In this document: piece by piece, positions 2 through 62,119 of the stretch | Layout: each line of letters begins with the position of its first letter | Position numbering within the stretch: position 1 is the stretch's first letter | NCBI GenBank assembly: GCA_002269645.1 | Contig: NIVC01001342.1 | Coordinates: forward strand, 62,001 to 126,000 | DNA length: 64,000 nucleotides | Direction: 5' to 3' | DNA from: Macrostomum lignano | Lineage: Eukaryota | Program-made: the position numbers and the translations under genes | The notes under the pieces: generated by a model | Databases searched by the model: none | The model's input: the letters and a program-made list of their open reading frames with translations, nothing else | Told to the model about the DNA's origin: nothing

Positions 2-1848
2 TCGCCTAGCAGCCTCGATCGCCAGTTGTCCGGTACGTGCTCGGCGAAGCTCCCAGTTTCCACCAAGGTGCCGAAAGAATCCGCAGCGACCAAGCCATCG
101 AGGCTGCTGCTTGTCGAGCAGTCGCCAGAGTCGCCTGCCGCGGTCGTCGATCCCGGCACGACGCCGGAAACGGCCGGCACGCCGAAGTCATCCAGAGTGC
201 TGGTTGAAGAATCCCCGGACACGGACGCCGTGACGATGCCGACAAAAGTCGCCGTTTGCACACCGACAGTGCTGGTGGAACAGTCGCCAGATGCGTCGGA
301 CAGCGCCGGCTCTTCGAAGGCGCCGGCGGATAAGTCCTTGGAGCTGTCTGTCGCAGAGTCCCCGGAAGTTGAAGTTCCAGTTCCGATCGAGCCGGAAGCA
401 GCAGTTCCGGCGCCAACCAAGCCAGAAGCCCCAGTTCCGGCGCCAACCAAACCGGAAGTGCCAGTCGCAGTGCCAATCGAACCGGAAGTGCCAGTTCCGG
501 CGCCAACCAAACCGGAAGCACCAGTTCCGGCGCCAACCAAGCCGGAAGCGCCAGTTCCGGCGCCAACCAAGCCGGAAGCGCCAGTTCCGGCGCCAACCAA
601 ACCGGAAGTGCCAGTTCCGGCGCCAACCAAACCGGAAGTGCCAGTCGCAGTACCAACCAGTGGTGCCCCGATGTTCAAGCTGCCCGAGTCGAGGCAGAAG
701 CCGGAAACCGCGGCGGCTCCATCGAAGCCGCCACAGGGCCTGGACTGGCCGGATGACAGCTTCGTGGTGAACTCCCAGCTGGCCAGGCTGTGCGACATCG
801 GCCTCACTGGCCAGCCCATCGTGCGTCAGCCGCCCGAGACCGCCGCCGACAACCCCGCCGACTGCAGCGACGCTGACGATCCCTGTGCCACCGAAGAGGG
901 CAGCTTCGTTGTGATGGATGCCAACGCCCAGGCGCTGAATGTCCTCGGCGACACCATCACTGAGTCCATGCTGGCCGCCATCGATGAGAACTCGGTTGTC
1001 AAGCGAGCCGCAGCCGACCGTCAGGGACCTCCGCAGCCGTCAACACCGGTGGTGGCCTCGTCGCCCTCCACGCCGCGGTCGATTCTGAAGGCATCGGCAT
1101 CCGCCGCCGCCAGCCCAGCCGCCCTGCTGCTGTCCCGCAAGCGACCGCTGGCCAACAACAGCGCCGACGCATCCGCTGACGGCGAGGTCGACGAGACCAG
1201 CGACGCCGAGATGGCCCCCACGCCCAGCCGGAAGCGGGTCCGGTTCGCCGACCTCAGCTTCCCGGATGTTGAGGACGCAGGCCTGGAAAAGGACGCCGAC
1301 AGCTCAGACGCTGCAGTTGGCGCGGCTCCATCGCTGACGCCCACGAAGCCGGCGCTGCCGTTCGCGGTGAAGCCGGTGACGTGCAGCGAGGCGGAGCTGT
1401 CGGCCTTCATGCGGGACACCCTCGCCGTCAAGGAGTTCGCCTTCGCCCTCGCTTTCGAGCCGCTGGACCCGACGGCCAATCGGGACGAGAACGGCCGGCC
1501 GAGGGTCATCCGGGCCGACGACGACCCGGAGCTGCGGCTCTCCTGGCCGGCCGGCCGCGTCCGCTGCGTCGGCGTCGCCCTCTGCCTGTCCGAGTCGACC
1601 GTCCACTACCTGGACCTCACCGGCCGCGCCGTGCCGCTGCGCCAGTGCCTGTCCCTGCTCAGGCGGAAGCTCGCGCTCGCCAAGAGCCTCGCCTGCTTTC
1701 ACTGCCGGCGGCAGTGGGCCGCCATGGCCAGGTGCCTCGGCTACCAGCTGGAGCCCGGCTGCCTTGTGGATCCCGGCGTGGCCGCCTGGATGCTGGACCC
1801 CGCCGGCAAGTCGCACGGCATCACCGCCGTTGTGAGTCCGAATCCTAA

Positions 1849-1891
<43 letters not shown>

Positions 1892-1912
1892 ATGTATGTC
1901 TGTCTGTATGTA

Positions 1913-1949
<37 letters not shown>

Positions 1950-1978
1950 TTCTTAGTGTCTGTCTGTCTGTCTGTCTG

Positions 1979-2015
<37 letters not shown>

Positions 2016-2078
2016 TTCTTAGTGTCTGTCTGTCTGTCTTTCTTAGTTTCTGTCTGTCTGTCTGTCTGTCTTTCTTAG

Positions 2079-2135
<57 letters not shown>

Positions 2136-8816: not shown

Positions 8817-11800
8817 ATGGCTGCACCACAAACTGGTGAGCCTACTTCAGTAAATGTGTCGGTTGGCAGTGCATTCTATTGCAACACTGTCCTTGTGTTA
8901 TAAATGTAGTACAAAATTAGAATCAGGGCAGAGACTCCATCCGAAAACTAGGCTAGTGTGCCTTTGGAGACGAAGAGCTTGATGATGGCTTTCATTAGCA
9001 GCTGTCATCAGCATGGAGACATACAGTATGCCGAGGGGCTTGATGATGGCTTCATTAGCAGCTGTCATCAGCATGGAGACATACAGTATGCCGAGGAGCT
9101 TGATGATGGCTTCATTAGCAGCTGTCATCAGCATGGAGACATACAGTATGCCGAGGGGCTTGATGATGGCTTCATTAGCAGCTGTCATCAGCATGGAGAC
9201 ATACAGTATGCCGAGGGGCTTGATGATGGCTTCATTAGCAGCTGTCATCAGCATGGAGACATACAGTATGCCGAGGGGCTTGATGATGGCTTCATTAGCA
9301 GCTGTCATCAGCATGGAGACATACAGTATGCCGAGGGGCTTGATGATGGCTTCATTAGCAGCTGTCATCAGCATGGAGACATACAGTATGCCGAGGAGCT
9401 TGATGATGGCTTCATTAGCAGCTGTCATCAGCATGGAGACATACAGTATGCCGAGGGGCTTGATGATGGCTTCATTAGCAGCTGTCATCAGCATGGAGAC
9501 ATACAGTATGCCGAGGAGCTTGATGATGGCTTCATTAGCAGCTGTCATCAGCATGGAGACATACAGTATGCCGAGGGGCTTGATGATGGCTTCATTAGCA
9601 GCTGTCATCAGCATGGAGACATACAGTATGCCGAGGAGCTTGATGATGGCTTCATTAGCAGCTGTCATCAGCATGGAGACATACAGTATGCCGAGGAGCT
9701 TGATGATGGCTTCATTAGCAGCTGTCATCAGCATGGAGACATACAGTATGCCGAGGAGCTTGATGATGGCTTCATTAGCAGCTGTCATCAGCATGGAGAC
9801 ATACAGTATGCCGAGGGGCTTGATGATGGCTTCATTAGCAGCTGTCATCAGCATGGAGACATACAGTATGCCGAGGAGCTTGATGATGGCTTCATTAGCA
9901 GCTGTCATCAGCATGGAGACATACAGTATGCCGAGGAGCTTGATGATGGCTTCATTAGCAGCTGTCATCAGCATGGAGACATACAGTATGCCGAGGAGCT
10001 TGATGATGGCTTCATTAGCAGCTGTCATCAGCATGGAGACATACAGTATGCCGAGGGGCTTGATGATGGCTTCATTAGCAGCTGTCATCAGCATGGAGAC
10101 ATACAGTATGCCGAGGGGCTTGATGATGGCTTCATTAGCAGCTGTCATCAGCATGGAGACATACAGTATGCCGAGGGGCTCCGTGCGCTTCAACCCATCT
10201 CTCTATTAGCCAGTCCTGGCCTCTATCCAATTCTAACCAATTCAACAATCTGATTTGCAGTTGATGCTGATATATTAACGGGTGTCAGCCAAGGCGACTC
10301 AACTGCCACAGGTGAGCATGTGCTTGCATGATTGGGCGATGGTGTTTTGTAAAAAAGAAAATCGATTATGCTAATTTAGCGCTGGTGCACCTGCGGCTGT
10401 AATTTGGTCTCGATGAAAATATACAACAGCTGAAACCGAATATTCTAAAACTCAACACTACAGTTATGAATAGGAGAGTATAGTATGATGCAGTTATGGT
10501 ATTTTTAATTTTCCTATGTACATGTACGAGTACTATAAAGTATAACCATCTAGGAACTGAATCTTTATCATGTAGCTATTGTTTCGAACATTCTGGTTCC
10601 AAATGATGCATGCGATCTTGCAGAAGATGCTTATTTTATTGCAGGTGAGACCGATCCGCCATCGATTCCACAGAGCTCGCCTCCTAAAGATAGCGGAGTC
10701 ACTCCACAAAAGGACCAAGGTGAGCATGAATTACTTTGACTTAATGAGTAGCAGTGAACTCAGCTGTCAGGTATTATTCATTATCACAAGTAGTCTGTCG
10801 ACCTTACTCTGGATTTAGTTGAAGCTCTTTAAATGCTTTTTACACACGCAGCCTCACCGACTCTCACTGAATAGCTAAAGCCTCAAATAGCGTCTTCTGT
10901 TTTGTAATATGCCATCAGGGACTGTGTTGCATTACCATTGCGCATTGTCATTGGCTAGTTAGAATGGGACAAGAAACTCGATTTTGGTTCGGAAGAATGT
11001 GGCGAAAAAGCTTTTTCTAAGTAAGCTCCGTATTTGTGTGGGCGTCTGCTGTGTATTTGTTCGCGTGAATTTTATGGCCATGGAAAGAAAGCTCAGCTTT
11101 CTTGACGGCCAAACGCGCTGACGGCCGCATTGCTTGGCATTTTTCCTGGCATGCCAGCAATCTGGGGATCCGCAGACTGCATTGGCTTCTCAGAGCCTAA
11201 GATATTTCTTCATCGCTACCGTATATTGCTTTGCAGTTGCTCCTCTCTCTCTCTCTCTCTCTCTTTATCTCTCTCTCTCTCTCTCTCTCTCATGCACGCC
11301 TCAAACCTAATCTGGCCTCTATGTGTACGGCTGGGGGTAGCTGAGAGTGCCGGTGCACGAGCGCTGCACCAATCGCAGACCGCAGGCCGCCACAATAGGG
11401 ATATTTTTATCCAAATTCAATCGAGGCTTAACTTCCCAGACTTTGTGTCGAGAGCATATTCATGAGGCCAGGCCAGTCCGCACTGCCATCAAACGGGTAA
11501 ATCAGTGTGCATTGTACATTGATCTATGTAGAGTACATCAGTCATGTAATCACACACATTTTTTACTCGTTGATAGCGGTGTGGACGAGCCTTTTTTGAG
11601 CAGAAAGGAGATAATCAATATTTTCCAACCTGTGAAATGTAAATTATTAATTTTTTCATTAGCTCATGGCAAGCAACCAACAATAAATAGTGAAGGAACA
11701 ACGTATTACCCATCTTAACCTATAGCGCTGCAGTGATGTACCTGCGAGAATGGAATTGCAAGCGCGAGATAAAAAACATAATTGGAAATTTTTGCTTCGG

Positions 11801-14800
11801 GAAATTGGACATTGTCGGGTAGCATCGCACCGAACAAACTGAACCTTCTTTGTGATTAGAAGTTCAGGATGTACACTGAAATTAGTAAGATAGCAGGTAG
11901 AAATTAGTTACAAGCGTATCAATGAGTTTGTGACACCGTGCGTACTGCTTACGCTTTACCGCTGTAGAGAAAATAAGACTAAAAACACTAGAACTAAATT
12001 AGATGTTAAATTGAATACTAAGATACGCCAGTAAGTGGGCGCAGGGCCCAAACAAGTATATTTATATGACTAATTTAGAGGGGGGTTGACTCCAGATAAT
12101 AAGGAGAGGGGTGAAGTGCGCGACTGAAGAGAGAGGCGAGAATGGAGAACCAATCAGAAGGCAGCAAGGGAGAGAGAGAGATAAGAATAACAAGATTGAG
12201 CTAGACAGAGAGAGAGAAAACGGAGTAAACAGAGACAATGTGAAGGTGAACTAAAGAAATGACTAGGAAAGTCGCGACACTCCCCCCAAAAAATGGAACA
12301 TTTTTTGAATTTTCGAGTACCATTACCAATTGAAATTAATGAGTTAGAATTAGGTCGAATTAAATTGAAAAACACATTCACAATAAATGGTGTATAAAAC
12401 GATTTGAAAAATACATAATGACTAAGAATTTGAATACAAAAACAGTAGAGCGAATGCAAAATATTAAGACCGAATTTTAAACTTAGATTTTTATTGAGTA
12501 GTTTTTGAACCAATGAGAAGACTGAAAAGACTGAATATATCCACCCTCCCCCTTAAAAATTAGCAATTTTTAATTGTAAATGGCTAGTACAGTTTAGAGA
12601 AAACATTAACATTGTCAGTTGAGTAAGAGAGCTGAGATGAGAGAGATGAGATGAGATGAGAATCAAGTTGATGAAAAGAACAACTGGAGACGACTAGAGA
12701 CAACTGGAGACACTGACAAGAGAGGAGGGGACCGAGTGAAGAAAGTTTGACAAAGACCGGTGAGATTGACTGCCGACACCGACTCCGAAGACGTGACGAC
12801 GGCCCGAGTTGAATTGTGAATATGCCGCCGGCACCGACTCCGAAGACGAGACCGACAGCCCGAGTTGAAATGCGAATATGCTGCCGGCACCGACTCCGAA
12901 GACGAGACCGACAGCCCGAGTTGAAATGTGAATATGCTGCCGGCACCGACTCCGAAGACGAGACCGGCAACCAGAGATGAGACGATTGAGAGGCCGGCAG
13001 ACGAGACGATTGAGAGGCCGGCAACCAGAGACGAGACGATTGAGAGGCCGGCAACCAGAGACGAGACGATTGAGGCCGGCAACCAGAGACGAGACGATTG
13101 AGAGGCCGGCAACGAGACGATTGAGAGGCCGGCAACGAGACGATTGAGAGGCCGGCAACGAGACGATTGAGAGGCCGGCAACCAGAGACGAGACGATTGA
13201 GAGGCCGGTAGACGAGACGATTGAGAAGCCGGCAAGCAGAGACGAGACGATTGAGGCCGGCAACCAGAGAGGAGACGATTGAGAGGCCGGCAACGAGACG
13301 ATTGAGAGGCCGGCAAGCAGAGACGAGACGATTAGGAGTCGATGACGGGATGACGAGATGACTGGTGTAGGGCTACGACAACGACGATGGCATGGCCTTT
13401 GCCAGCCTTACTGTATTGACTGAATTATTTTTCATTGGGCGCCATGTAGAGAAAATAAGACTAAAAACACTAGAACTAAATTAGATGTTAAATTGAATAC
13501 TAAGATACGCCAGTAAGTGGGCGCAGGGCCCAAACAAGTATATTTATATGACTAATTTAGAGGGGGGTTGACTCCAGATAATAAGGAGAGGGGTGAAGTG
13601 CGCGACTGAAGAGAGAGGCGAGAATGGAGAACCAATCAGAAGGCAGCAAGGGAGAGAGAGAGATAAGAATAACAAGATTGAGCTAGACAGAGAGAGAGAA
13701 AACGGAGTAAACAGAGACAATGTGAAGGTGAACTAAAGAAATGACTAGGAAAGTCGCGACAACCGCAGCTTCACCTGTTTTGCATTTCAGTTGAACAACG
13801 CTGCGTTGCGGTATTCAGCAGCAACTTGTCTTCGGAATCTCCTGAAGCAAAAGCCGGAAATGAATATTTTAAATTCATTAAAAGCTGCGGCTTTTCCTCG
13901 AATCCGGATTCCAGTCAGCTCCAGCTAAACCAGCTGATCAAGCGTGATCTTTCGGGCACAAGATTTTCAGTTGTTGTCGTGAATGATAAGGAAATCGGGA
14001 ATTCGCTGAGCTTACAGAACACTCTCGAAGACATTAAAAAATCCAAAACGCAGCGCTGCCTGCTTGTCTACTGCAAGGTTGACAGCAACCGGTCGTTCGA
14101 TACTTCGGTTGACTTTTCTGAGAGCTTCTACCAAGAAAGTTACAAAAACATTTTCTGCTTGTATAAAGTTGCAGCGGCTGATCGGATCGAAAATTTTTTC
14201 AAGTCCTTGAAGGAACATCAAACTCTGCATTGGCAGACGAATTGCATCGGGTCAATTATTCGTAAAGAATCATTCAAAACTTCCATCAAGGAAAAAGGGA
14301 TTGTTGATCTCAAATACGGCACACCTGAATTCGTGCGCTTTCGACAGCCTTGCCGATTTAATGAGAAAAGTAGAGATTATCTTAAAGAGGACTCAAAACT
14401 GCTCAGAACTCAGGATTTGCAGCAGATGAAGCAAGACGCAACAAAAAACGAAGATAAAATGGGTTACTATGAGCGCCATGGCGAACCAACTGCTCTTGTT
14501 GTCAATTGCGTGACCACTGGTGGCGCTGACGCACTCGAAGGTTCAAAAGTAGACAGTGACCGACTGTGCTACTTGTTTGAGAACATGCTGTTTGGTGTAG
14601 TGCAATTTAACAACCTGAAGGCGAGCGAGCTGATTCGTACGGCTGAAGAGTTTAAGGAGCATCACAACCTGTGGATTCTCGTCATAACTGCTTTTGAAAA
14701 AGACGGTAAAATTGAGTGCTCGGACGGCTTAACAGTAACTGAAGCCGAAATTATCAGTGCTTTAAAAAACACTGGCAATCGGTCAGCTCCAAAGCTCGTG

Positions 14801-15253
14801 ATATTCAACTTACGAATAAAAGGAGTTGAGCAAGAATCCACTGACGGTACAAAGGAAAAGGCCGACGCTAGACGGACGAATATCCCATATAATTGCCGGG
14901 AGCTGGCGCAGTATCTTAGAATATCCATGAATACAGATGAATCACATCACAGCCAAGCTGGCCTGGTCACGTGCAGGTATACTGAGCCTCTTTGCGATAA
15001 AACTGGCAGCGAACTGGTCAAAAGCATCTGTACTGCATATTACAAGCATGCCGATAGTAAGGACGTGGTTTCACTAATCAACGAAGTCAACAAATTATTT
15101 CGCCGCCCCTCAATGGATGGTTTCGATGAAAAGCCACGATGGACGTGGCTAACGCACAGAAACTTCTTCTTGTGCAAGACAGACGCGGAGCAGCCGTCGC
15201 ACGAAAAGTCGAATGGAAAAGGAAATTCTTCGCAAGAAAAAAAAGGTTGGTAG
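8817..15253 (+). CDS. Caspase-like gene A, catalytically dead (pseudo-caspase) with N-terminal alpha/beta domain
   Basis: Model: ATG exon 8817-8835 (MAAPQT), micro-exons 10261-10311 and 10645-10719 (both phase 1-1), large exon 13791-15253. Caspase-fold landmarks ALVVN...GSKVDSDRL..LF, PKLVIF, GSELVKSIC, NFFL. No His-Gly dyad; the catalytic Cys position reads N-L-R (Arg codon at 14813). The large exon is well supported, the 5' exons are inferred. Confidence 0.75.
8980..10180. repeat. 60-bp tandem array, about 20 near-identical copies, in first intron of gene A
   Basis: Unit ttgatgatggcttcattagcagctgtcatcagcatggagacatacagtatgccgagg(g/a)gc; no spacers; a single copy exists at ~24123-24186. Confidence 0.97.
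11963..13761 (-). mobile_element. Non-autonomous mini LTR retroelement (TRIM-like), family 1
   Basis: 317-bp LTRs at 11963-12279 and 13445-13761 (TGTA...GACA, no differences seen). 5-bp TSD ACCGC. Minus-strand PBS TGGCGCCCAA (10-nt match to tRNA-Lys PBS). PPT-like ttttttggggggag next to the other LTR. Internal ~1.17 kb of short tandem repeats with no gag/pol. Confidence 0.92.
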
Positions 15254-15575
15254 AATTGTTCCAATTAGGCTTGCAGAAGTTACCAAACGCTTCTGTAAAA
15301 ATGATAATACGAGCGTACGCTTCGTATCCTGCAAGCGTAGCGTTACGCTCATATGATGAAATTCCTTTCGACTGCTTGTACAGTTCATACAGTTCAGATA
15401 ATAACTCTTGAGTGCTTGAAACAATACTGGATGATGGGGTCTCCAATTGGGTATTGTTTTCTGGAACGTGACGGTTGAGTTTGACAATGTGAAATTCGAG
15501 TTTGAAAAATTTCAGTAAGTTAAAAAATGCATGTGAATACCCCGAGTCACTTTATGAAACTTCTAAATTTCAGAA

Positions 15576-17044
15576 ATGCCTGCAGGGCCAAGCGGTTTTC
15601 AACCAGGTAAAATAAAATTTTGTTTTCATGTCGAAGTTATAAATTTCTTGCACAATAATTTACGTGTCAAATTGTCTTTTTAGGTTCCCACCAGGCGCTG
15701 ATACTGTTGGACAGCGGCATCCAACAAAACGATGGGGAAATTTTAAAGAAAGCTCAAGATTTCGAAAAACTTCTTGCTGCCAGTGGCTACCAGGTAAGGG
15801 CAGAGGAAGTTGAGATAACAGAAAAGTTTGAGCTATTCTGCACCCCCAGTGCAGTCACATGTAATGCGAAGTTCGTTCTGGCTCTCCTTGTCTACACTAC
15901 GTATCGCGACCTGCAGCAATTCAAGAATAAACTTGAAAAACAAGCAAGCAATGCTAAGGACATTGTTGTTTTTTCATGCGAAATCGGATCGCAGAATGAA
16001 CAGCAAGTAACGAAAATCAGTGACAAAATGTTTCACGTTAGCGTTCGTAACAGTGCAAAAGTAATCTCTGAATGTATTCAGAAGTGGCTGGATAAAGTTA
16101 AAATCAGACAGCAAGCAGAACAACTCCAGGGTGGAAAAGAATTCCCTGTGATACCGCTTCCGCGACGACGCGAAGAAACATTAAATACAGATGAAGCTTT
16201 GGTTTTTTCGAATGTTGGACACGACGAAGAAGTAAAAGAACCGATTGAAGGGAAAAACACTATTTCAAAACCTGAGGGGAAGCGCCCACGCCTCCTGATA
16301 GTCAGCAACGCTATATTCCCTAAATGTGAGGATGACAGACTGGCCAGTCTGTACGATACTGCAGTTCTGCGTCATCTTTTCCAGCAGTTTTACTACCGAA
16401 TTTCCATCTGGCACAATTTGAGCTCCGAAGCTTTGCGAACAGTGGTTGAGGAGTTCTCCAGCCTTAAAGATCACAGCAAAACCTCTGTTATCGTTTTTAT
16501 GTCACACGGAGAGCTCGGAAAAATTACGGGAGTTGATGACAAAAGCGTTGAGGAAAACGATCTGTTTGAATCCCTAAACAACATTAAAGAGCAGAAGCTT
16601 GTAGTCATTCAATCCTGCAGACACCGCGGTGCTGAACGAAATGTCGTCTGTAAAATACCGGCTAACACGATAGTTGCTTACTCCACCGCTCCTGGAGACT
16701 ATAGTAGTCGAAAGGACGGTTATGGTAGCAGGTTTGTTCTCACCCTCTGCCAGGCCTTTGCTGATTATGTTCGTGACATTCCGAATGAGCAACTGGATGT
16801 TATTGAGATCAGCAAGTTCGTTAACTATCGCATGATGCACTATTATGAAAAGCCTAATTATCCTGATGAGCCTAGTCATCTTGCTACAGATAGCCACCAG
16901 TGGCAGCTGCCGTGTTGGACAGCCACAACAACAGAGAAGTTCTGGTTGGTTAATGCGGACAACAAGGCGGACAATAATGCGGACAATAATGCGGACAATA
17001 ATGCGGAAAATAATGCGGATAATGAAGACAATTCAGTTGCCTGA
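15576..17044 (+). CDS. Caspase gene B, intact catalytic dyad, with N-terminal alpha/beta domain
   Basis: ATG exon 15576-15606 (MPAGPSGFQP), 77-nt intron, exon 15684-17044. SHG (His at 16505), QSCR (Cys at 16616), S1 arginines in DDRLAS and YSSRKDG, GSRF, EKFWL. Confidence 0.9.
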
Positions 17045-18699
17045 TCAGATGGACTGAGGAGCCTGAGGCAAGGCCAGAACAATTTAAAAGCAAATAAAAC
17101 TAATAATAGCTACAACTGACTGACAAAGCATGTCCTTTACCCTTTGCTTATAGTGTTGATGCTCATTCACACCACATCTTAAAACCAGGCCAAGCTTAAT
17201 AATGTTAATCACGTGGCTTTTTAAATTTTTTCAGTGCCGTAATTTGATAGCAGTGTGAGCGAGCGTGACGCGTAAATCTTGACTCAAAAATATTTGCATG
17301 ATTTGTTTACGCTCTCATTCAAGGCTTAATCTTACTCTGAAGATCAAATCAAATGCTCAGCTTACAAGACTTGCTTTTTCGATTGCTAATTCATCAGTTA
17401 TTGCTATCATTAGAGTATACTCTGTAAAAATGAAATAAAAATCGATTGGAATCTTTATATCAGATAATACATAGTTTATCATTTCAGTTGGTTCCCCAAT
17501 CAATTAGCCCCAGCGTATGTATATTAAACATGAGTACAGCTGTGCAGGTTTTTTAGGTATTGCCATGCTATCACGCAATTGCACACAAACTCAAATCAGT
17601 TGACTAGCATACGCCATTGCCCAATATTGAAGTCATTTTAAATAAATCATTCAATTGCTCAATTCATTCTTATACGTAAAGCATGAAATTTGAAACGAAT
17701 TCCTCACGTTACCAGGGCGGGGAAAGAGTACAAAGTTTATTAAAGGCTGAGCAATTTGATTGATTCTCCAGTAAAAATGGTATTTATAAGCAGATTTTTA
17801 TGAAACAGTGTTTCTGTCAAATAGGTCAATGCATGTTTTCAAATTTGAAAAATGATTTCTCTCTAAGTTAAGGGCGGCTCTCACATAAATTAATTATTTA
17901 ATATTGTCACCTGTTCTGCATTATATTGCAGTTATAATTTATTATATATTATATCGCATTACCTTACATTGTATTTAGCTAGCATGTGTCGCGTGTCTGT
18001 GTGAGACTTTCTTGGCTTTAAACCCTCTTGAGCACCTTTTGTGTCTGATTTTGCTTCTTATAACTTTGCAATTGTAGTTTTTGCATGTTAGTTACATTTA
18101 GCTATTTTATAAGCTAAAAATTGAAGTTAATAATTTTCCTCTGCCATTAATACACTTTTTGACTAATGCCATTCTCCCCTGGTGCTTCAGTCGTGGGCTG
18201 GAACACCCGTGCACGCCACTTCCTTGAGCAGTTTCTATTCGGCAGGGTTAACATCTGTGCTGTGCTCGAGGAATCGTCTCTAAGCAGGTAGCAGGGAATG
18301 AAGCACCGCGCGATCCCCACCAATTTTTCGATTCTGACAATTTTTTCAAGGGATTCAAAGTTCAATTTTATTAAAGAATCGTGAAGAAACCTAATAAGGT
18401 GTCGGAGCTGCTTTATTTTGTCTTTTGATTCAAAATACGCTGGTAGCTACTCATTTCAAATATGTACTTTACTGCACGGGTGCTGGTTTGAGTCTTTGCT
18501 ATTCTGCTTTCTATTTATGATTATCTATAATCAAAGAAAACTAATTTCAATAATAAAAATCTATAAATCAGTTTCTTCGTTATATAATACTTTTTATCAT
18601 AAGTTCGTGTGTAGAACCGATTGTTGTTAAATCATTATTTATTCCACAGAATCTGCTGCTTCATTGCGTTCTTTTTATTTCTGAGAAAGTATCTAATCG

Positions 18700-18754
18700 C
18701 CATCACCATCATCAGCATCACCATCATCATCACCATCACCATCATCACCATCAA

Positions 18755-18790
<36 letters not shown>

Positions 18791-18800
18791 TATAACCATC

Positions 18801-18832
<32 letters not shown>

Positions 18833-19750
18833 CATCATAATCATTATAACCATCATCATCATCATCATCATCATCATTATCATCATCATTATAACCATCA
18901 TCATCATCATCACCATCACGATCACCATCATCATTATCATCATCATCATCATCATCATAATCACCATCTTCTTCTTCTTCTTCTTCCACCTTTTTTTCGC
19001 CTCCCGGCGTAGGTGGCACCCTGTGTTTCGGGCGTTTCCTCTTCTTGTCACTCGCCGCATGCTCTCTCGTGCCGTGCCATGTTGGTTGCTGACAGCCATC
19101 TCTTACAGTATCGACATTCTGCTCTCTTCCTTTTGTGGATCCTTGCTATCATTCTCGCCGCTTCGTCGTTCGTCCTCGGTCCTTCCATTGCATGGGGCTC
19201 CTCCTCGCACTTCTTCCTGTGTCTTGCGTAGTTAGTCTTACTGATCCACTTTTTACAGTTGTTACATTCTCTTCTTGTGCCTTCCGTCCTGCCTCCCGTG
19301 CACCATTTCTCGTGATTTTTTCTTGTCGCTTCCGTTCTGAACTCGCTGTTGCATCTCTCGCATCTCATTCTTATGCCCGTATCGGTCTTGTGCATTCTTT
19401 TTTGGTGGATGGCTAAGCCTCCTCTCGATCTGCATACTTTACCGCAGTTCTTTTCCCAACACCTGAAACCTGTCAGTTCGTTTTCATCCGTTTGAGTGCT
19501 GTTGAGCTGGTTTTGTTCCTCCCGTCCTTCGTCGTCTCTTTCTGCACCCTTGCATCTCAGCCGTTCGATCTTTTGCCACTCGACGTTTCTTTTCCTGATG
19601 ATCTCTTTCCACTTGATCCTGTCGTTCGCGTATTGTCCTACCTTGAGTGGATCGAGTTTTGTTTTCCGGACCAGCTTTTTCCAGTAGGTGATGATTGTAG
19701 TTCTTCTCTTCTTCTGTCTTCCCCCCAGACTTCCCCCCATCATCATCAAG
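18700..19750 (-). mobile_element. 5'-truncated non-LTR retrotransposon (RTE-like) 3' end with (GAT)n tail
   Basis: ORF 19048-19749 carries the LINE C-terminal ANDRIKWKEII motif and four C2H2/C2HC fingers (CxxxxCGKVCRSRGGLAIHQKRMH etc.), followed by a ~270-bp (CAT)n array at 18700-18970. No RT domain remains. Confidence 0.6.
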
Positions 19751-21664
19751 GACGAGTCCCCCGGTCGTCAGCAGTGAACATCAAGCGAAGATCATCACCT
19801 GCTAGCTATCAGCGAAGACTGGGACAGCATCATCCCGGGTCTACGGCTGCGGAGCATCAAGCCGATTCGGTCACTGTGGATTGCCTGGTCTCCGGCTGTT
19901 GAGTTTCTGATTTGTTGGGTAAGAGGCTACCTAGACTTGCTTGATTGGGTGATCCCCTATCTGTCCCCTGTTTCAGTAGCTGGATTAGGCGCACACTTTT
20001 GCTCATTTTGTTCAGTAGTGCTGTTACTGAGGCAGAAATCACTTAATAATACTGCTAGTAGTCTGAAACTCCAATTCAATCTGAGGTGTGAAGAGATATA
20101 AGAAGGTTAAATCTAACAGTTATTTTATTTCTTTGTTCGCCGATGGCTCAGATGAGTAGCTAAGCTAGTAGGCACCGGTCACAGTGGACCAATGGCCAGG
20201 CAGTTCTCAGTCGATCAATCAATCAAATCAGTGAGCAAAACTGCCAGAAGTGCAGAATCGGCGCCAGAGATGTACTTTGTGCACTCTAGGTTAGCCAAGC
20301 GGCTCGGGTAATGAATCATGCGAGGTCTCCGAAGTTCGAGTTAGTCTATCATCAGCGCTATGGGAGGCTAGTTGGCGCGTTGAAGGCCAAAAGTACATAC
20401 CTTCGTATTTAGCAATGTAATAGTACATGTAGCTACCCCATAGACTCGCCACTGCAAGAATCCCCTGCACAAGTCCCCTCTGTACCTGCATGGCCAATGC
20501 GATCTAGTCCCAGCAGTGTCCCTTATCATCGGCTATGACTTCGAGATTGACAGCAAAAAGACACTAGTTGGCAGGTAAGTGCAAAGCCCCTTCTAGTCGG
20601 AAGCCCGATTTCGAGAGTCCCGGTGTGGTGAGCCAGGACGCACGGGCTGGTGGCAGCGAGTTAGCTTAGTCTGCGGATTAGCTAATTTCTACCTTTAAAA
20701 TTCTCCCTGCTTGTCTCTCGCTGTCCCTCTCTTAGCTATAGGACCTAGACTGCTCGCCACACGATCAAGCTACCATGGGGCTGACCATCTGACAGGAGTG
20801 GGGGGCCAGGACTCTAATTGATTTATTTCTGAGGCCTGAGGCCCGAAGGCTTCCTCACAAGGGGCCTGAAAGGTCGAAACCCATCAATTTAATGAATCGT
20901 AAATTTATGATTTCTAAAGTTCATATGAGAATGTAGCGATACTATTGGTATTGTCAATTTTCAAGCATTTAACACGGTTTTAAAGTAAAGTAAAATTATT
21001 CAGACACTTTCTCAATACCACTAGCAGCACATTGGCCGTGCAATTTTATAATTTTTGGAGGCTAACATCATTAAAACATTACACTGCGGAGACAGGAAAA
21101 AAAGTCATTTTTGCATCACAAAATCAAACGATAGCATTTGATCTCTGTTAATGAAGATTACCATTCTTTTAATTTAGGATGCAAAAGATGTCAGTCTGTT
21201 GTATTTTATACATGTAAGTTTTTTCCTAATATATATTAGGAACATATATCTATATTTTTTTATTTTTACAAGCCAAAAGTTATAATTACTCACTAGTGAC
21301 ATTATTAGCTAAAATATTTTGTTTTGCTTCGTCTTGAAGCAAGTATATATATGATGCAGAATATAAAGTGTGAAAAAGTGACACAAAAATAAAATAAATT
21401 CATAGAGTATAAAAAATGAAAACTAGGAAGATGAAACTCATTAACGCGCAACTATTAGTATATAAAATACAGCAGAGTAACATGTTGTGCACGCTAAATT
21501 AAAATAATGGTCGTCCTCGTCCTCATCCTCCAGAAAGAAATGCTTTGGATAGTATATTTTGTGATTAAAACATATTCTCCTCTCTACAGTGTATTTTTAC
21601 GGAAATCAGCCTCCAAAACAATTACAGGATCTCTGAATCTGACTGTATCGTGGGTTGCTTTCAC

Positions 21665-21895
21665 AAGCTCGAAATTTCACAACATCGAAACCAGTTATTT
21701 TCATAAGCTCGAAATTTCACAACATCGAAAATTTCAGCAGCCGACTTCATATTCATAAGCTCGAAATTTTACAAGCTCGAAATTTCACAACCTCGAAAAC
21801 CATTTTAGCAGCCACTTTCACAAACCCGAAACTTCATAAGCTCGAAATTTCATATCCTCGAAAATTTTAGCAGGCGACTTCATAAGCTCGAAAGC
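21665..21895. repeat. Degenerate aagctcgaaatttcacaac tandem repeat
   Basis: Direct reading, about 6 copies. Confidence 0.75.
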
Positions 21896-22734
21896 TAGAG
21901 TGAAAAATACAAATACAGTATATTTTCGAGGTTCACCAAGCCACCAAGACATGGCACTACTATAGGCTCGCCCACGGGGGTAGGGGGGAGAGCTTTTATT
22001 GAATTTAATTGATTTGACTCTTATAGTTTTACTTAGTTTTACTACTGTACTGATTTAATCTGTTTTATTTTTCTAAACTCGATCACTAAAATACTAAAGT
22101 ATCGCACTAATTGGAAACCAAAATACATCAATTGCGTAAGAGCCCCCTCAGGGCTGAAGCGCAGGGCCTTCGTTTGCTCATTACTTATCAATGAATGAAT
22201 GAATGAATGAAAGGAAAAAGATTTCGTATATAGCCGCGAACAGAATTCGAATTACATACAAATTCGTAATTCACATACGGACAGTTCCCAGAATAATACA
22301 TAAGTTTGTCTGTCACTCATTTTGCGCAAGACACCCAGACACTGCATGTAAAAAACTGCAAAAGGACTTTTAACAGCTTTGTCATACAGACAGATCAACA
22401 GACAGACAGACGGCTTTTGCAGCAGCTACTTATCTACATGCACCTAGGCGCTGGGTAAATGTTTTAGCAGACAAAAAACCAAATACTTTTACCAAGTGCT
22501 GCTCTGTCTAAGAAGAATAATTTATTCTTTTTTCTCTTCATTATATATTCATTAACTGCGTATTAACTGCTGCGTATTACATTTGTTATATTACAGCCAT
22601 ATTTCCGGTGGTCTAAGCCGCGTTGTAGGCCATGAAGTTATCGTACTCTTCACAAATTTAAAGCAAATTTACTGTTTTAATTCTTGGCAAAACTTTTCTC
22701 GTTCATAAAATACTGGTGGACTCAGTATTCGTCT

Positions 22735-23245
22735 CAATTGGCGCCTAAGGTCAAATTTGGCGCCAGGACCCCCAAAATTGGCGCCGAAAGCTAAATTTGG
22801 CGCCAGGATCCCCAAATTTGCGCCAGGATCGCCGAAATGCTGAAATCAGCTCGAGAGGACCCAAACTAGCCCTGGAAAGCTCAAACTAGCGCTGGAGAGC
22901 TCAAATTGGCGCGGGAAAGCTCGAATTGGCGCCGAAAGCTAAATTTGGCGCCAGGATCCCCAAATTTGCGCCAGGATAGCCGAAATGCTGAAATCAGCTC
23001 GAGAGGACCCAAACTAGCCCTGGAAAGCTCAAACTAGCGCTGGAAAGCTCAAATTGGCGCGGGAAAGCTCGAATTGGCGCCGGAAGCTAAATTTGGCGCC
23101 AGGATCCCCAAATTGGCGCCAGGATCGCCGAATCAGCGCTGGAATGTGCCAACGGGCGTAGAAGTGGCAGCATATATCAGCTTGCTACTTTTTGGCGCCG
23201 ATTTTAATATACCGGCGCCAATTTCAGCCTTTGGGCGCCTATTTT
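22735..23245. repeat. ggcgcc-rich repeat with internal tandem duplication and inverted ends (foldback-like)
   Basis: Repeated aaatttggcgccaggatcccc and aagctcaaactagc blocks; ggcgccaaattt inverted at the right end. Confidence 0.6.
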
Positions 23246-23897
23246 AGCGCCCTGGCAAGGTCAATGCATTTAGTTCTCACGCGATGGAGCCAAAAAAAAT
23301 TTTTTCTTTTTTTTGAATTAGTGCCATGTATCTTGCCAACCAATACGAGTCAAGTTCTGGCGTCTGCTTCTCCACAGCCGCCTTGCTGGGTCCCGTTAAC
23401 AAGCTTTTTTTAGCGTGGGAAACTGTCTGACTCACTCATTGGATCCCCCGAGTCCACGGGTGCAAGGGCTAGCCAAGGTGGACCCACGGTGGAGCCACCT
23501 GGCTAGCCACGTATTTTTTGTTTAGTGGACTGCATGGCTAGCCTGGGAAAATGCTCTGCTGAAACAGCTGCATTGCCCCCCCCCCTCTGTACAAGTACAT
23601 TCACCCTCATTCCTCTACTACTGCACAGTTTAACCAGCCGAATGTGTGTCCGTTAAAGAGAAGCTGACTGAGTCAGCCGCGTTCCCGTGGCTTGCCATAT
23701 ATGGGGCTTTTTCTCCAGATTTTTTTGTGTGAAGCGCTTGCGCTGGAGAGAGTTCTCTTTTTTTCGGAGCAAAATAAAGCTTATTGCAGTTTGACTGTTT
23801 TGACCCAAGCAACGCCTGTTGTGTCTTGAACGCTAAAGACGCACCTTTCCGTTCAAATAGCACGGAAAGTTCTTCCGGTACAGGAGCCGCACGAGTT

Positions 23898-24447
23898 ATG
23901 GCTGAAACCGGTGAGCAAAAGCTGAGCAAAGCGTGATTTAAGCTCAGCTGTCCATACGAGCGTAATTGTCTCTTCGTGTATTGAGCCTACTTCAGTAAAT
24001 GTGTCGGTTGGCAGTGCATTCTATTGCAACACTGTCCTTGTGTTATAAATGTAGTACAAAATTAGAATCAGGGCAGAGACTCCATCCGAAAACTAGATTA
24101 GTGTGCCTTTGGAGACGAAGAGCTTGATGATGGCTTTCATTAGCAGCTGTCATCAGCATGGAGACATACAGTATGCCGAGGGGCTCCGTGCGCTTCAACC
24201 CATCTCTCTATTAGCCAGCCCTGACCTCTATCCAATTCTAACCAATTCAACAATCTGATTTCCGATTTCCAGTTGGATCTCTTGTAGCGGATCGCAACCA
24301 AAGCATCTCAGCTCCAGCGGCCACAGGTGAGAACTTGCATTGGGCGATGGTGTTTGTGAAGAAGACAATCGATTATATAAATTTAGCGCTGCTCTACCTG
24401 CAGCTGTAATTTGGTCGGGGATTTGCAGACTGCATTGGTTTCTCTCT

Positions 24448-24532
<85 letters not shown>

Positions 24533-27005
24533 GTCTCTCATGCACGCCTTAAACCTAACCTACTCCTTGTACAAGTATTCAATAAATAAAAATTTTAGCG
24601 TTAGAGAAGTTGAAAACAGAAGTAGACTTTTGAACCTCGTTAGTGGAGACGTGCTTCTAAGAAGTGACGTGAGCGCGTGTCCAGTAAGAGGGCCTGGTAG
24701 AGAGAAATGGGTGAAGAGGTCCAACAGCAGTCAGTGGTGGCGCTCTCCCGCGTTTCCATAACCTGCAAGGCTGAGCTGCATGGGTCTCTCCTACAGATAT
24801 TTTTGAGCAGTGCAGTGCTTGCGCAGGAGAGAGGGTTCTGTTCCGGGGAAAAATAAAGCTTATTGCAGTTTGGCTGTCTCGATCCAAGCAACGCCTATTG
24901 TGTTTTGAACGCTAAAGGCAGATTCATTTTTTCAACGGCATCAAAGAGCATAGAAGGTCCTTCCGGCGCAGGAGCCCCGGAAGTTATATTCAGCTCACAA
25001 GAAGTTGAGCAAAAGTCGAGCAAAGCCTGCTTTAAGCTTAGCTGACGATAATTGTCTCTTCGTGTAATGAACTCTTGTCAGGAACACAGGGAAGGATAGA
25101 GAGCTTATATTACGTAATTAGCTGGTAGAACCATAGCCTACTCTAGTGAATGTGTGTCAGCAGCAGTGCATTCTATTACAACACTGTTCCTGTGTCATAA
25201 ATGTAGGACAAATTTAGAAGCAATTTTGTGCGGTTGCTATTTTGTAAAAATTAATTCTGGTACGCCGCCATAGCCATGGAAATATTTTGAATAACTGTTA
25301 AAGTTATTACTACTAGCTCTAGTCTGCGTATGGAGACGAATAGCTTGATGATGGCTTTTCATCAGCATGGATGCATAATACAGTATATCACTGATGACCC
25401 TGCTGAGGAGCTACGTACGCTTCAACCCAACTCTCTATTAGCCGGTCCTGGCGGCCTCTATCTAATTCTAACAACCAATTCAACAATCTGAATTGCAGTT
25501 ACGGATTGCAGACATAGCAGCACAACTTCAACAGGTGAGAATGTGCTTGAATGATTGGGGCAACGGTGTTTTGTGCAGAACCGGATGCGTTACTGCTCCG
25601 ATACTCAGCCCCAAACGCAAACTTTTTAACGCAAATCTTTTTTAATTGCATTTCAGACAGGAAGGCATTCTTTTTGAATATCACATCGAATACAGACTTC
25701 AAAAAGTACCTGGAGGACTGCGATTTTCAGTTGAAAGAATGCAATAACATTGATGAATGTACGAATCTGCTCACTGCTGAGAAGTCAGTTAAACTACAAG
25801 CAGTTCTTGTAGTGCATTCTGACAGTTCGGAACTCGATGATCAACTTAAGGCTCTATTCGAGGCATTCGATAGTGGCGAAAATGGTCAGCTGGAAAGACT
25901 TCTGATTGTTTGTGGAAACAAGGATCTGAAGGAGAAGCTGCGTGACAAAAAGAATCAACAAGCAATATTACTAAACGTGAATTTCCTATGTACGAGTAAA
26001 AAAGACGAAGAAGACACAGATGAAAGTGAGCTAAACGAGATCGCAGGCATGTTAATTGAAAACGAAAATCTTCAAAACACAGTTATAAATTTCAGTAGGA
26101 GCTCTAAAGACAAAATCGATAGTAGAAAATTCTACTATATTCCTGGCGGCGCCGGGTTTACGTTTTCGAGGAATCGTCTGAAAGAAAAAATCCCAAAATA
26201 TATCAAAACAGAAAACACTTCTGAAAACACAGAAAACAGAAAACCACCTTACAAACCACACAAGAATCGCGCTCTCATTCTTGTGAGCAAATCGCTACAC
26301 GATGACAAATCTGATTTGGGCAGAAGTGCAAGGATGGACGTTACGAATCTGCAAGACGCACTTGAGCACGCCAAATTTAGTTCTCATCAATGCAAAACAA
26401 TCACTGTAGATTTTGACTCTGTAGAATATGAGAACCTGTTCAAAAATGAGAACAATGAACAGCCGTCAGAGGATTCCAGGCCTTCCCATGTGGTTGTCAT
26501 CCTTGCTGAAAAGACCGAAGTCGAGAAAGCTAACACACTGCTCACTAAAATTAGCCAAGGCAGTTGTTTTTCCAACTCGCACAGGCTGGTTGTTGTTCAT
26601 CTGCGAGAGCGCTTAGATGTGATTACCATGGATGATCGAACTGCAGGGGAAGTTACTGATTCAGCGTCTGATGGTCCAACTCCAGACTTGCACTTTCACA
26701 AACAAAGCGGTCTGATCATAGTCAGATCTGAATCAACCCCTGCTGATGCCTGTTCCCTCCTGGGTAGCCGCTTCGTGCTCGCTCTGTGCTCAGCAATTTA
26801 CTTCGGTGCCGGCAACACAGATGTGGCTTCAATGATCTGCCCCATCAACAGCATCGTCAAGAACGGCTTTTCAAACAAACTTTGCGCGAACTTTGCGGAT
26901 CAAAATGTTGAAAATAATCTGCTTCTCCCGTACTGGATTGTGCAGACAACCGATGAATTCTTTCTTGACGAGGATAACGGTAAATTCACATTTGAACTGT
27001 CATGA
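23898..27005 (+). CDS. Caspase-like gene C, catalytically dead (pseudo-caspase), paralog of gene A
   Basis: Model: ATG exon 23898-23910 (MAET), micro-exons 24273-24326 and 25499-25534 (phase 1-1), large exon 25657-27005. Caspase landmarks RALILV...GRSARMDVTNL, RLVVVHLR, ST(P)...GSRFVLALC, EFFL. No His-Gly; Arg (26604) at the catalytic Cys position. The 5' region is clearly homologous to the 5' region of gene A. Confidence 0.72.
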
Positions 27006-27312
27006 CTACTTTATATTGTTTTACAAGTGTGTATTACCACATTTCGTTAGATATGGTACACATAATGGCGCTCAGATGAGTACAGATCAAATCACTTACG
27101 AACTCATAAAATCACAGCTGCTAATAATATAGAATTCAACAGTAGCTGTCATAGGCGCAGTCATGCAAATGGTCGAAAATATTCCATAAGCCAGGATCGG
27201 AGGTTGAAGATTTATTAAAAAACTAATGGTTAACATGTAGAAACAGATTAAAGTTAGCCAGATAAAATTGAATTATCTCACATTTCCAACAAAAAAATCC
27301 TATATCTACACT

Positions 27313-28767
27313 AGTAAGCATAAATTAAAATATTTAAAAAAAAATTTGAACCTTGCCATTGATTTCATTTCAGTGCCATCAAAGACACAACCAAAAACCA
27401 AACGTAAGGCAAAATTTAATTTTATTCAGAACTTTGTTGACTCGCATCTACAGTAATTCTGTCTAAAAATTTTAGCATTCGAACCATCAACAACAGCTCT
27501 CATCCTTGCCAAGCAAATGGAGAAGAAAGTTGACGGACTCCGCATTGCTCTGGAGGCAAATGGATGGAAAGTGCACGCTGAATATGGAGACTTTCAGACA
27601 GCACCAGACGACACTTCAAAGTTTACAGTTGTAATTGCTAGCTACGAGCTAGCTAGCGATAGCACATTTGAAAAAGATGATAAACTTGGCGTTTGGATTA
27701 AAACTGATAGTGAGCAGCGAAAGGAAAAAATAATTGAACTCCTTAATAAATTTGATAAATCAGAGACAGTCACGCTGTGCTCTTGTGCTGTCGGTTCGGA
27801 AGGTTTTGACTGCACTTGCAAGAAGTGCAAAGACAGTGCAAGTCATGAACCACTGATCTGCGTCAACTGCAAAGAGTGCGTCCGCTGCAGAGACAAACCT
27901 AAATCGTCATCGAAGAAAGTTTGCAAAAAATGTGGCCTGGCTAAATTTTACCGTGCAATCACAGTCGATCCAGCCACAGTCGATCCGGAAATACCCGTGC
28001 CGGAATGCTCTAGTAGTGAAGAGACAAAAAGCAGCAGCGAGGCACTGTGGAAGCTGACACAGCCAGATGAAAAACAAAGCTATTCAACTCCCGATCCCAG
28101 CACCCGCGTGCTCATCATCAACAATCTCATATTCGGCAGACATGGCAATCGCTTGGGTTCCGAGAAAGACACTCAGAGACTGTTAAAAGTGTTCACTGAA
28201 TTGGGATTCAAAGTTTCAATCAGAACCAATCTGACAGGGAAACAAATACATGATTTAGAGTTAAAAGATGACGTTGCTATTCTTGTACTAATGACTCACG
28301 GTATAGTAGGATACCTGTACGGATGCGACGATGATGATGCAAAAGAAAAAGATATTCTACAAAAGTTTGCCGGAAAAAGAACCGATAAACCGAAGCTGCT
28401 GATTTTCCAGGTGTGTCGCAACTATAGCGACGGTGTGTCGGACGAAAAAAACGAGCGCGAACCTCTGCCTGAATACGAGGACGTCATTGTGGCGCACTCA
28501 ACTGTGCCACTAGAGACGAGTGCGAGAGAGGGGTCAAAGGGGTCTCGATTCATCACTTCGCTATGCTCGGTGTTCCAGCAGTTTGGTAAGGAAGAAGACG
28601 TCGTGTCCATGATCGAGCGAGTCAATTACGAAATGGCGCACAAAAATTCAGCCGATAAGCGGCAGGTGTCCTCCTGGCTGGTGCGAATGGACAAAAAGTT
28701 TTTCCTGGCTCCGGCTGAGCAGAGAGCAGCTGGTAAAGCAGTTCAGCAACAACAGCAGAGCCAATAG
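27313..28767 (+). CDS. Caspase gene D, intact catalytic dyad, with N-terminal alpha/beta domain and Cys-rich insert; paralog of gene B
   Basis: Model: A at 27313, 60-nt intron, exon 27374-27403, 72-nt intron, exon 27476-28767. VLIINN...RLGSEKD, THG (His 28297), QVCR (Cys 28414), TSAREG, GSRF, KKFFL. Confidence 0.9.
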
Positions 28768-29109
28768 CAGCAGCAGAACCAGGAAAAGAAAAAGAAAAGA
28801 AAGCCGAGTAGCTTAAATTGCTTCAGGAATGGTACATGAGCAAGTTGTACCTGACAAGATCGACTTGTTGCTGTCGCACTGACATTAAGTTATGTGAAAT
28901 TCTCATTATTTAAATCCATATGCGATTTGAAAACTTGCTAACATTGCTTTTGCGACTTCAAATTTTGGATTTGAGTTTTCTCTCGCCTTGGGGTTTCAAG
29001 CGATGCGAGTTTTGGTTCGTTTTAGTTTAACTCGAATGTTTGTGAAAATATGTAATATTAATATCGAAATGTAAATCTAAATGTAAAAATAGTATATCGA
29101 ATATTTAGG

Positions 29110-29780
29110 TGCCACTCAACATCATTCCCCTCAGTGCCACTCAGCATCATTCCCCTCAGTATCACTCAGCATCATTCCCCTCAGTATTACTCAGCATCAT
29201 TCCACTCAGTATCACTCAGCATCATTCCCCTCAATGCCACTCAGCATCATTCCCCTCAGTGCCACTCAGCATCATTCCCCTCAGTGTCACTCAGCATCAT
29301 TCCCTTCAGTATCACTCAGCATCATTCCCTTCAGTATCACTCAGCATCATTCCCCTCAGTGCCACTCAGCATCATTCCCCTCAGTGCCACTCAGCATCAT
29401 TCCCTTCAGTATCACTCAGCATCATTCCCCTCAGTGCCACTCAGCATCATTCCCCTCAGTGCCACTCAGCATCATTTCCCTCAGTGCCACTCAGCATCAT
29501 TCCCCTCAGTATCACTCAGCATCATTCCCCTCAGTGCCACTCAGCATCATTCCCCTCAGTATCACTCAGCATCATTCCCCTCAATGCCACTCAGCATCAT
29601 TCCCCTCAGTGCCACTCAGCATCATTCCCTTCAGTATCACTCAGCATCATTCCCTTCAGTATCACTCAGCATCATTTCCCTCAGTGCCACTCAGCATCAT
29701 TCCCCTCAGTGCCACTCAGCATCATTTCCCTCAGTCCCCGACTCCCCACTCAGCATTAATCTTCCCAGTCCCACTCAACA
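29110..29780. repeat. 25-bp minisatellite cactcagcatcattcccctcagtgc
   Basis: About 26 copies; source of ORFs 29109/29134/29234. Confidence 0.95.
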
Positions 29781-62071: not shown

Positions 62072-62119
62072 GTAAGGACTGCGGAGTCCTTGGCGCTGGC
62101 TTCCTTGGGAGGGTTTGCT

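Follow-up and report, generated by a model that had tools for sequence, protein, structure and literature searches.

How might a caspase be activated when it carries no death-fold domain through which zymogens could be joined? In the usual account of caspase activation, zymogens are drawn together by death-fold adaptors. FADD has been lost from flatworms, and DED caspases too from the parasitic ones (PMC11463336). The question is raised here by a 64,000-nucleotide stretch of the genome of the free-living flatworm Macrostomum lignano (GenBank assembly GCA_002269645.1, contig NIVC01001342.1, positions 62,001 to 126,000 of the forward strand; hereafter the window, in whose numbering all positions are given), the plus strand of which holds four long open frames with caspase-fold domains, i.e., A (13791-15253), B (15684-17044), C (25657-27005) and D (27476-28767). 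Over bases 1-28283 of the window, sequence and contig record agree at 100%. An earlier note on this DNA took them for four caspase-family proteins, each opening with an unassigned alpha/beta domain in place of a death-fold prodomain. We find instead that the locus most likely comprises two paralogous head-to-tail genes, A-B (8817-17044) and C-D (23898-28767), and on balance we favour, somewhat above even, a reading in which each encodes a protein of ~900-1000 residues built of two modules, a dead caspase and then a live one, with lineage-restricted alpha/beta domains and pairing of the two caspase domains within the chain.

The four frames probably do not stand for four proteins, as A and B, like C and D, are joined by in-frame phase-1 GT-AG introns and by gene models. 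Each large exon begins at a phase-1 AG acceptor (13791, 15684, 25657 and 27476); no ATG is found close to the start of exon A or of exon B, and the first ATG of exon D lies downstream of its first strand. Exon A (13791..15245, 485 codons, phase 1-1) ends at the phase-1 donor AAG|GTTGGT, two codons upstream of its stop, and exon C (25657..26979, 441 codons, phase 1-1) at the phase-1 donor AAC G|GTAAAT, 8 codons upstream of its stop; with the phase-1 acceptors of exons B (15684..17044) and D (27476..28767), both joins are therefore in frame. Two caspase-fold domains per polypeptide are thus backed by in-frame canonical splice joins together with three existing gene models: P0003, in which exons A and B are both used, and the UniProt models P0001 (identical to the present locus) and P0002 (a paralogue), which splice exon C straight onto exon D (DEDN|AFEPS). 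Because the exons are so joined, the alpha/beta domains of B and D are internal and the label "N-terminal" fails for them; those of A and C are preceded by a short low-complexity leader, the true N-terminus being a Ser/Thr/Pro-rich leader of 22-48 residues.

For A-B, P0003 gives the exon order. Exon 0 (8817..8835, the start of P0003) supplies the ATG and MAAPQT and ends in phase 1 at a GT donor at 8836; exon 1 (VDADILTGVSQGDSTAT, 10261..10311, phase 1-1) is matched by P0003 at 100% identity in tblastn and has both AG acceptor and GT donor; exon 2 (GETDPPSIPQSSPPKDSGVTPQKDQ, 10645..10719, phase 1-1) belongs to the low-complexity leader. Exon A is followed by a 33-nt mini-exon, EMPAGPSGFQP (15574..15606, phase 1-1), and this by exon B, which closes with an (ADNN)n tail and the stop codon, ~45 nt upstream of an AATAAA. 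The assembled coding sequence is open over 997 amino acids. The tail itself (16957-17041, NADNKADNNADNNADNNAENNADNEDN) is (ADNN)n-like low-complexity sequence with many xxxD motifs.

The 5' exons of C-D were placed via P0003 and P0002, upstream-region tblastx and blastn searches for common 5' exons having returned mostly shared repeats. A putative exon 0 (23898..23910; ATG, MAET, phase 1, GT donor) is absent from the gene models examined and aligns to A-B exon 0 with ATG and donor kept and a 6-nt deletion, and a putative exon 1 (GSLVADRNQSISAPAAT, 24273..24326, phase 1-1) is homologous to A-B exon 1 and to the P0002 N-terminus. A speculative extra exon, TDCRHSSTTST (25499..25534, 36 nt, phase 1-1), duplicates the exon-1 region and has its AG and GT intact, and the coding sequence, of 893-905 amino acids, is open with it or without it. 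Equally speculative is a 30-nt, phase 1-1 mini-exon, VPSKTQPKTK (27374-27403), in the C-D intron; it occurs in neither UniProt model and lies 72 nt before exon D, mirroring the real A-B mini-exon, 77 nt ahead of exon B, and a look-up of the P0002 locus for a conserved counterpart returned no record. In both genes the introns are all phase 1 and the internal exons, including those of 33, 36, 51, 54 and 75 nt, are all 1-1 symmetric, and modules could therefore be skipped or duplicated with the frame intact.

Could the four frames nonetheless be translated as four separate proteins, cut from polycistronic precursors by spliced-leader trans-splicing, such that the alpha/beta domains are truly N-terminal? 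Trans-splicing is widespread in M. lignano, where multi-gene precursors make up ~7% of transcripts (PMC5730564). Moreover, the in-frame stops of A and C lie right behind the donors, only ~430-470 bp separate A from B and C from D, and the mini-exon at 15574-15606 carries an ATG right behind its acceptor (AA-ATG), from which a protein beginning MPAGPSGFQPGSHQALILL would be made. Yet three independent gene models splice over the A-B or the C-D gap, and an annotation pipeline based on RNA-seq, which sets gene ends where trans-splice and poly(A) sites have been mapped by experiment (PMC5730564), left A and B in a single gene, g1. Exon D also has no ATG ahead of its first strand, nor has the candidate mini-exon in the C-D intron, and the conserved phase-1 symmetry holds both joins in frame. 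Four separate proteins are thus unlikely in our judgement, and we retain two genes of two modules each. This structure corrects the local annotation, since NCBI gene BOX15_Mlig027753g1 (8817-18283, product P0003) represents A-B as a truncated isoform only, and the C-D gene is unannotated in the same record. A literature search with the gene id Mlig027753 gave no match.

The caspase-fold domains differ sharply in their catalytic residues. Against Pfam PF00656 (Peptidase_C14; bit-score cut-off 21.4), the A domain (14492-15178) scores 30.3 bits (E=4e-7), the B domain (16292-16954) 99.7 bits (E=3e-28) and the D domain (28108-28713) 115.5 bits (E=4e-33). The more degenerate C domain (26271-26972) on its own matches nothing in Pfam or the PDB; pairwise alignment places it as a homologue of A (z=11.7) and D (z=7.0), and all four domains are mutually homologous by the same means (z 4.3-43). 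At 62080-62879 the C pseudo-caspase gave weak tblastn matches (E 0.5-5), taken as chance. The PDB matches of the caspase domains are caspase-7, caspase-3 and CED-3, at ~1e-11 for B and reaching 9e-20 for D against caspase-7. In B the His-Cys dyad is present (SHG and QSCRH; His275, 16505-16507, and Cys312, 16616-16618), as it is in D (THG and QVCRN; His275, 28297-28299, and Cys314, 28414-28416). In A, by comparison, the catalytic His is replaced by Phe (14693-14695) and the catalytic Cys by Leu (14810-14812), the segments reading AFE and FNLRI and TAFE facing LSHG in the alignment with CED-3; in C, neither residue stands at its catalytic position (26505-26507 and 26601-26603; LAE and VHLRE). 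Judged by sequence, A and C are pseudo-caspases because they lack both the catalytic His and the catalytic Cys.

The pocket for aspartate, too, is intact in B and D. As read from the alignment, the equivalents of Arg179, Gln283 and Arg341 that line the S1 pocket lie in DRLAS, QSC and SSR of B and in NRLGS, QVC and SAR of D, and the first Arg is replaced by Leu in A. Since A and C share Leu-Arg at the position of the Cys, the sequences suggest that the catalytic residues were lost before the duplication that gave A-B and C-D. The intersubunit linker of B is very short and free of Asp, on which ground B may act as a single chain.

What, then, are the regions that precede the caspase domains? They span ~13791-14270 in exon A and ~25657-26060 in exon C, each followed by a linker; in exon B, a core at ~15684-15990 is followed by helices to ~16126 and a coil linker to 16291, and in exon D, a core at 27476-27807 is followed by a Cys-rich insert (27808-27936) and a linker running to 28107. 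All sixteen peptide strings quoted in the earlier note are found at the starts of the four plus-strand frames. Of the common opening described there, strand, helix and [G/D]-aromatic are shared by all four, but the x-V/L that was to follow fails in A, which reads GFSS. A composite pattern, defined post hoc with the data already seen (four hydrophobics, then phi-x-x-phi-[LIVM]-x-x-x-[G/D]-aromatic), falls among residues 1-36 in 4/4 exons, compared with 0.0003-0.0011 per sequence in composition-preserving shuffles and 3/860 six-frame 50-mers of the window. The common opening is thus well beyond chance. Past it, the N-domains of B and D are similar to one another (Smith-Waterman score 60, z=4.9, reached by 0/300 shuffles). 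A MAFFT alignment of all four was set aside as untrustworthy beyond its first 45 columns.

No known domain accounts for these regions. At E ≤ 10, none of the four gives a Pfam match to CARD, DED, Death, PYD, TIR, TIR_2, SEFIR, Peptidase_C14 or another clan-CD family, the noise below cut-offs being Melibiase_2_C, Fringe and PGA_cap. In the PDB, the N-domains of A, B and C as queries, and likewise a B+D profile, brought up noise, with kinesin, XPB, UBR1 and endonuclease 4 at E 0.3-5. The description as unassigned therefore holds for all four regions, without a genuine Pfam or PDB sequence match at E ≤ 10. Database relatives of all four open frames are exclusively M. lignano proteins; word-index searches with the N-domains recovered P0001-P0003 alone, and an index-free HMMER search of 1.84 billion representative proteins, run with the B+D profile only, recovered P0002 and P0003 alone. 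As far as the searched databases show, the N-domain family would thus be lineage-restricted, and its sequences appear to evolve fast.

The regions before the A and C caspase domains might be unrelated to those of B and D past the short opening, i.e., fast-drifting spacers with amphipathic alternation rather than a single conserved domain. Such a view would be in keeping with the lack of significant similarity of A and C to anything else, with low predicted local distance difference test (pLDDT) values throughout the models described below, and with the unlike order of secondary-structure elements in B and C. It sits poorly with the placing of the opening motif at an equal exon offset in all four, with open frames of 200+ codons kept at ~40% GC, and with a regular (beta-alpha)5 periodicity in C. 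In D, the N-domain core is 98.2% identical to that of the paralogue P0002 and the Cys-rich part with the linker 96%, whereas the caspase domain reaches 86.5%. Because it is more conserved than the caspase domain that it precedes, the D N-domain is, on this sequence comparison, not a decaying spacer, and for the set as a whole we consider drifting spacers improbable. The Cys-rich insert of module D, 43 residues directly behind the N-domain core with 11 Cys and 1 His (CxCxxC, CxxCxxCxxC, CxxC), is absent from B and conserved in P0002. In Pfam it matches nothing, and in the PDB only UBR1 and a PHD finger came up, as weak noise (E 1-5); from its spacing it looks like a small zinc-binding element.

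Structure prediction points to alpha/beta domains. AlphaFold models were made for the B and C N-domains from alignments of ~four effective sequences. The B model (mean pLDDT 48, predicted template-modelling score [pTM] 0.44) has block-mean pLDDT values of 34-83 over residues 1-100, with strand 4-10, helix 13-33, strands 37-43, 49-52, 57-60 and 66-71, and helix 74-89; past residue 100, where pLDDT is <50, helices are predicted at 106-114 and 125-148 and coil from ~149. The C model (mean pLDDT 45, pTM 0.35) is a regular (beta-alpha)5 arrangement over residues 2-135 and then coil, its strands at 2-7, 25-29, 48-55, 81-86 and 107-112 each being followed by a helix. Its top Foldseek matches are the receiver domains of DctD, AdeR, ETR1, Spo0F and PhoP, flavodoxin, and designed Rossmann 2x2 proteins; these flavodoxin-like matches lie at E 7e-3 to 0.2 with target-normalised TM-scores of 0.45-0.64. 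The structured portion would thus amount to ~100-150 residues, the remaining 60-100 up to the caspase domain being predicted coil with pLDDT <40.

These results bear unevenly on what had been proposed. The N-domains are not death folds: no CARD, DED, DD or PYD match was obtained, and the B and C models, at low confidence, alternate 5-6 strands with helices, which supports an alpha/beta class. A flavodoxin-like (beta-alpha)5 topology is weakly supported by the C model and its weak matches, but the B model matches nothing, and with the element orders of B and C differing, a single alternating fold in all four is unproven. The structural comparison that the earlier note had called for was made on the B and C models and placed no TIR or SEFIR domain and no C14 peptidase among the best 50 matches of either. 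Likeness to receivers is confined to topology, as C shows no sequence similarity to them, and a direct reading against the model elements finds ITSN after strand 1, HSD at the end of strand 3, CGN at the end of strand 4 and no Lys after strand 5. With the acidic pocket, Thr and Lys of the phospho-acceptor site thus absent, the C N-domain is not a receiver domain.

TIR domains are themselves (beta-alpha)5 flavodoxin-like folds. The topology predicted for C would be compatible with one, and N-domains of TIR or SEFIR type would make these proteins immune-signalling caspases, as the earlier note had suggested. The sequence evidence runs the other way, with no TIR, TIR_2 or SEFIR match in Pfam at the threshold above and PDB sequence results free of TIR proteins, and the absence of TIR domains from the best 50 Foldseek matches of both low-confidence models agrees with it. 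We regard this identity as highly improbable.

The second identity proposed earlier, a degenerate caspase-like (p20) domain, is compatible with the data, and no test of it is significant. Here the N-domains would be worn caspase or clan-CD half-domains derived by internal duplication, so that each gene would hold four caspase-fold units. The opening strand, with the helix that closes in G-aromatic-x-V, mirrors the alpha1-"LGF.V"-beta2 segment of caspases, and the D N-domain segment LRIALEANGWKV can be set beside LLKVFTELGFKV of the D caspase domain. A hydrophobic strand ending in Cys lies 86-104 residues from the module start in 4/4 (LLVYC, VVFSC, LLIVC and TLCSC). In C, His54 (25815-25817) closes predicted strand 3 and Cys86 (25911-25913) closes strand 4, which is the topological layout of the clan-CD catalytic dyad; the Cys alone recurs in the other three N-domains, and at the earlier strand end C alone has His (VVHSD, without Gly), with N, Y or K standing there in the rest, so that the equivalence is one of topology. 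A forced hhalign alignment is collinear and sets the N-domain Cys onto the catalytic Cys, and locally the D N-domain aligns best with the D caspase domain in the helix3-strand4-Cys region. A caspase fold without strand 6 would, in addition, be classed as flavodoxin-like, and Foldseek therefore leaves a p20 origin undecided.

Set against this, z is ≤2.0 in all 16 Smith-Waterman comparisons of N-domains with caspase domains, and hhalign, in global and local modes, gives P 0.15-0.26 and a probability of <0.5%. There is no Peptidase_C14 or other clan-CD match in Pfam at E ≤ 10 and no caspase among the best 50 Foldseek matches, so that the C14 match by which internal duplication was to be recognised appears by none of these four routes. 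In the C model, strands 4 and 5 are separated by a helix with no counterpart in caspases, and the domain measures ~135 residues rather than ~230. A p20 origin is, in sum, doubtful, albeit with an appreciable chance of being correct. Its fullest form would make each gene an array of p20-like relic, dead caspase, p20-like relic and live caspase, in which intra-chain pseudo-dimerisation replaces death-fold recruitment; that array we think quite unlikely. Were it true, the relics would have kept their strand-4 Cys in 4/4 and, in C, a His/Cys pair, and might bind substrate or keep a cryptic activity, and the array would represent a new caspase activation route without an adaptor platform.

The reading that we prefer, a dead and a live caspase behind alpha/beta domains of their own, suggests the following mechanism. 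Each module would run from an alpha/beta domain (~100-140 residues; flavodoxin-like (beta-alpha)5 being its likeliest topology) through a disordered linker (60-100 residues) to a caspase-fold C14 domain, with the first module (A or C) dead and the second (B or D) furnished with the His-Cys dyad and the Arg/Gln/Arg Asp pocket. With no CARD or DED to join zymogens, the dead domain would serve the live one as a partner within the same chain, much as FLIP(L), itself a separate chain, aids caspase-8 (PMC7586951). Non-catalytic roles, as regulatory, spacer or oligomerisation modules, would fall to the alpha/beta domains. Asp sites right behind the dead domains (FFLCKTD|A and FFLDED|N) would offer putative processing points, at which the live domain could cut the two halves apart.

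Several observations weigh against this reading. In-chain pairing and autoprocessing are proposed by analogy. P0003, the sole annotated A-B isoform, quits exon B after 37 codons (internal donor after 15793, ...ASGYQ) for a terminal exon at 18188-18280, and so skips the live caspase domain and keeps the dead one; such an isoform could be regulatory or an assembly artefact. The ATG of the A-B mini-exon makes it possible that a B mRNA is trans-spliced and translated separately. As to a common N-domain family, the five pairs other than B-D give Smith-Waterman z<0.6, with no likeness of A or C past the opening motif, and the B+D profile fails on A and C, where 43/500 and 109/500 shuffled decoys score equally well. 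As to the fold, both models are of low confidence (pLDDT 48 and 45, pTM 0.44 and 0.35), the C matches in Foldseek are at E 7e-3 or weaker, and the B model has no match in the PDB below E=0.13. Element order is unlike in the two, a strand pair of B taking the position of helix 2 in C, and a near-single-sequence model may idealise an alternating pattern.

Comparison with known systems places the proteins among caspases of several kinds. B and D resemble effector caspases (caspase-3/-7 and CED-3; MEROPS C14A) in their Pfam and PDB matches, in the His-Cys dyad and in the Arg/Gln/Arg aspartate pocket; they differ in being the second half of a two-module protein, in being preceded by ~200 residues of alpha/beta domain plus linker rather than by a short prodomain, and, for B, in the very short, Asp-free intersubunit linker. 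The pair formed by FLIP(L) and caspase-8 (PMC7586951) offers a dead caspase-fold domain with a live paralogue, and A and C, like FLIP(L), are without the His and Cys; in the flatworm, by contrast, dead and live domains apparently share one polypeptide and have no DEDs, and their pairing is a proposal. Proteins with two CASc domains, many of the domains without the QACxG cysteine, are found in the mussel Mytilus coruscus (PMC10967218). There, too, each predicted protein has two caspase-fold domains; the lineage is another, sequence kinship is unproven, and the flatworm modules add the alpha/beta domain. Some lophotrochozoan caspases carry ankyrin, kinase, Z-binding, PARP or ROC prodomains, and the same survey reported a kinase-prodomain caspase from M. 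lignano and no further unexpected flatworm prodomain (PMC11463336). The present proteins resemble these in having a pre-catalytic region that is neither CARD nor DED, and are set apart by an alpha/beta domain that matches no Pfam family.

The architecture is accordingly unusual, as had been claimed, yet not unprecedented, tandem CASc domains and non-death-fold prodomains both being known. What is new is a tandem dead-plus-live caspase with a repeated alpha/beta module matching no Pfam family, rather than a new category of caspase. If true, an in-chain dead partner combined with a repeated non-death-fold module would allow one to ask, in a natural setting, if covalent pseudo-dimerisation is able to stand in for induced proximity. 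With an N-domain family apparently found only in M. lignano among the searched databases, the wider relevance is limited until orthologues turn up.

Further features of the window lie around and between the two genes. Intron 0 of A-B contains a 60-bp tandem repeat in 20 copies with 99% match (8977-10180), of which a lone unit stands at the corresponding site upstream of C (24116-24185), and the 5' regions of A-B and C-D have repeat-rich sequence in common that is ~80-99% identical. Repeats of 23, 30 and 56 bp occupy 12770-13333 in intron 2 of A-B. Other tandem arrays, i.e., (CATCAT)n, (CT)n and a 25-bp unit in 25 copies downstream of D, occur at 18701-18968, 24455-24539 and 29109-29735, and such arrays account for the long repetitive pseudo-open reading frames (ORFs) in the ORF list. 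Between the caspase genes, on the minus strand, an ORF of 233 amino acids (19048-19749) shows several C2H2-like Cys/His spacings with no Pfam match and may be transposon-derived. At the left edge of the window, in a region of 61-66% GC, a gene resembling DNA polymerase theta (Pfam DNA_pol_A, 2e-43) is represented by its 3' part at 26-3865 on the plus strand, and the NCBI record has a 2157-amino-acid helicase-polymerase product ending there. Far downstream, a plus-strand ORF at 53163-54608 encodes Cys_rich_FGFR repeats (Pfam 3.5e-21) of the Golgi apparatus protein 1 type and is unrelated to the caspase genes.

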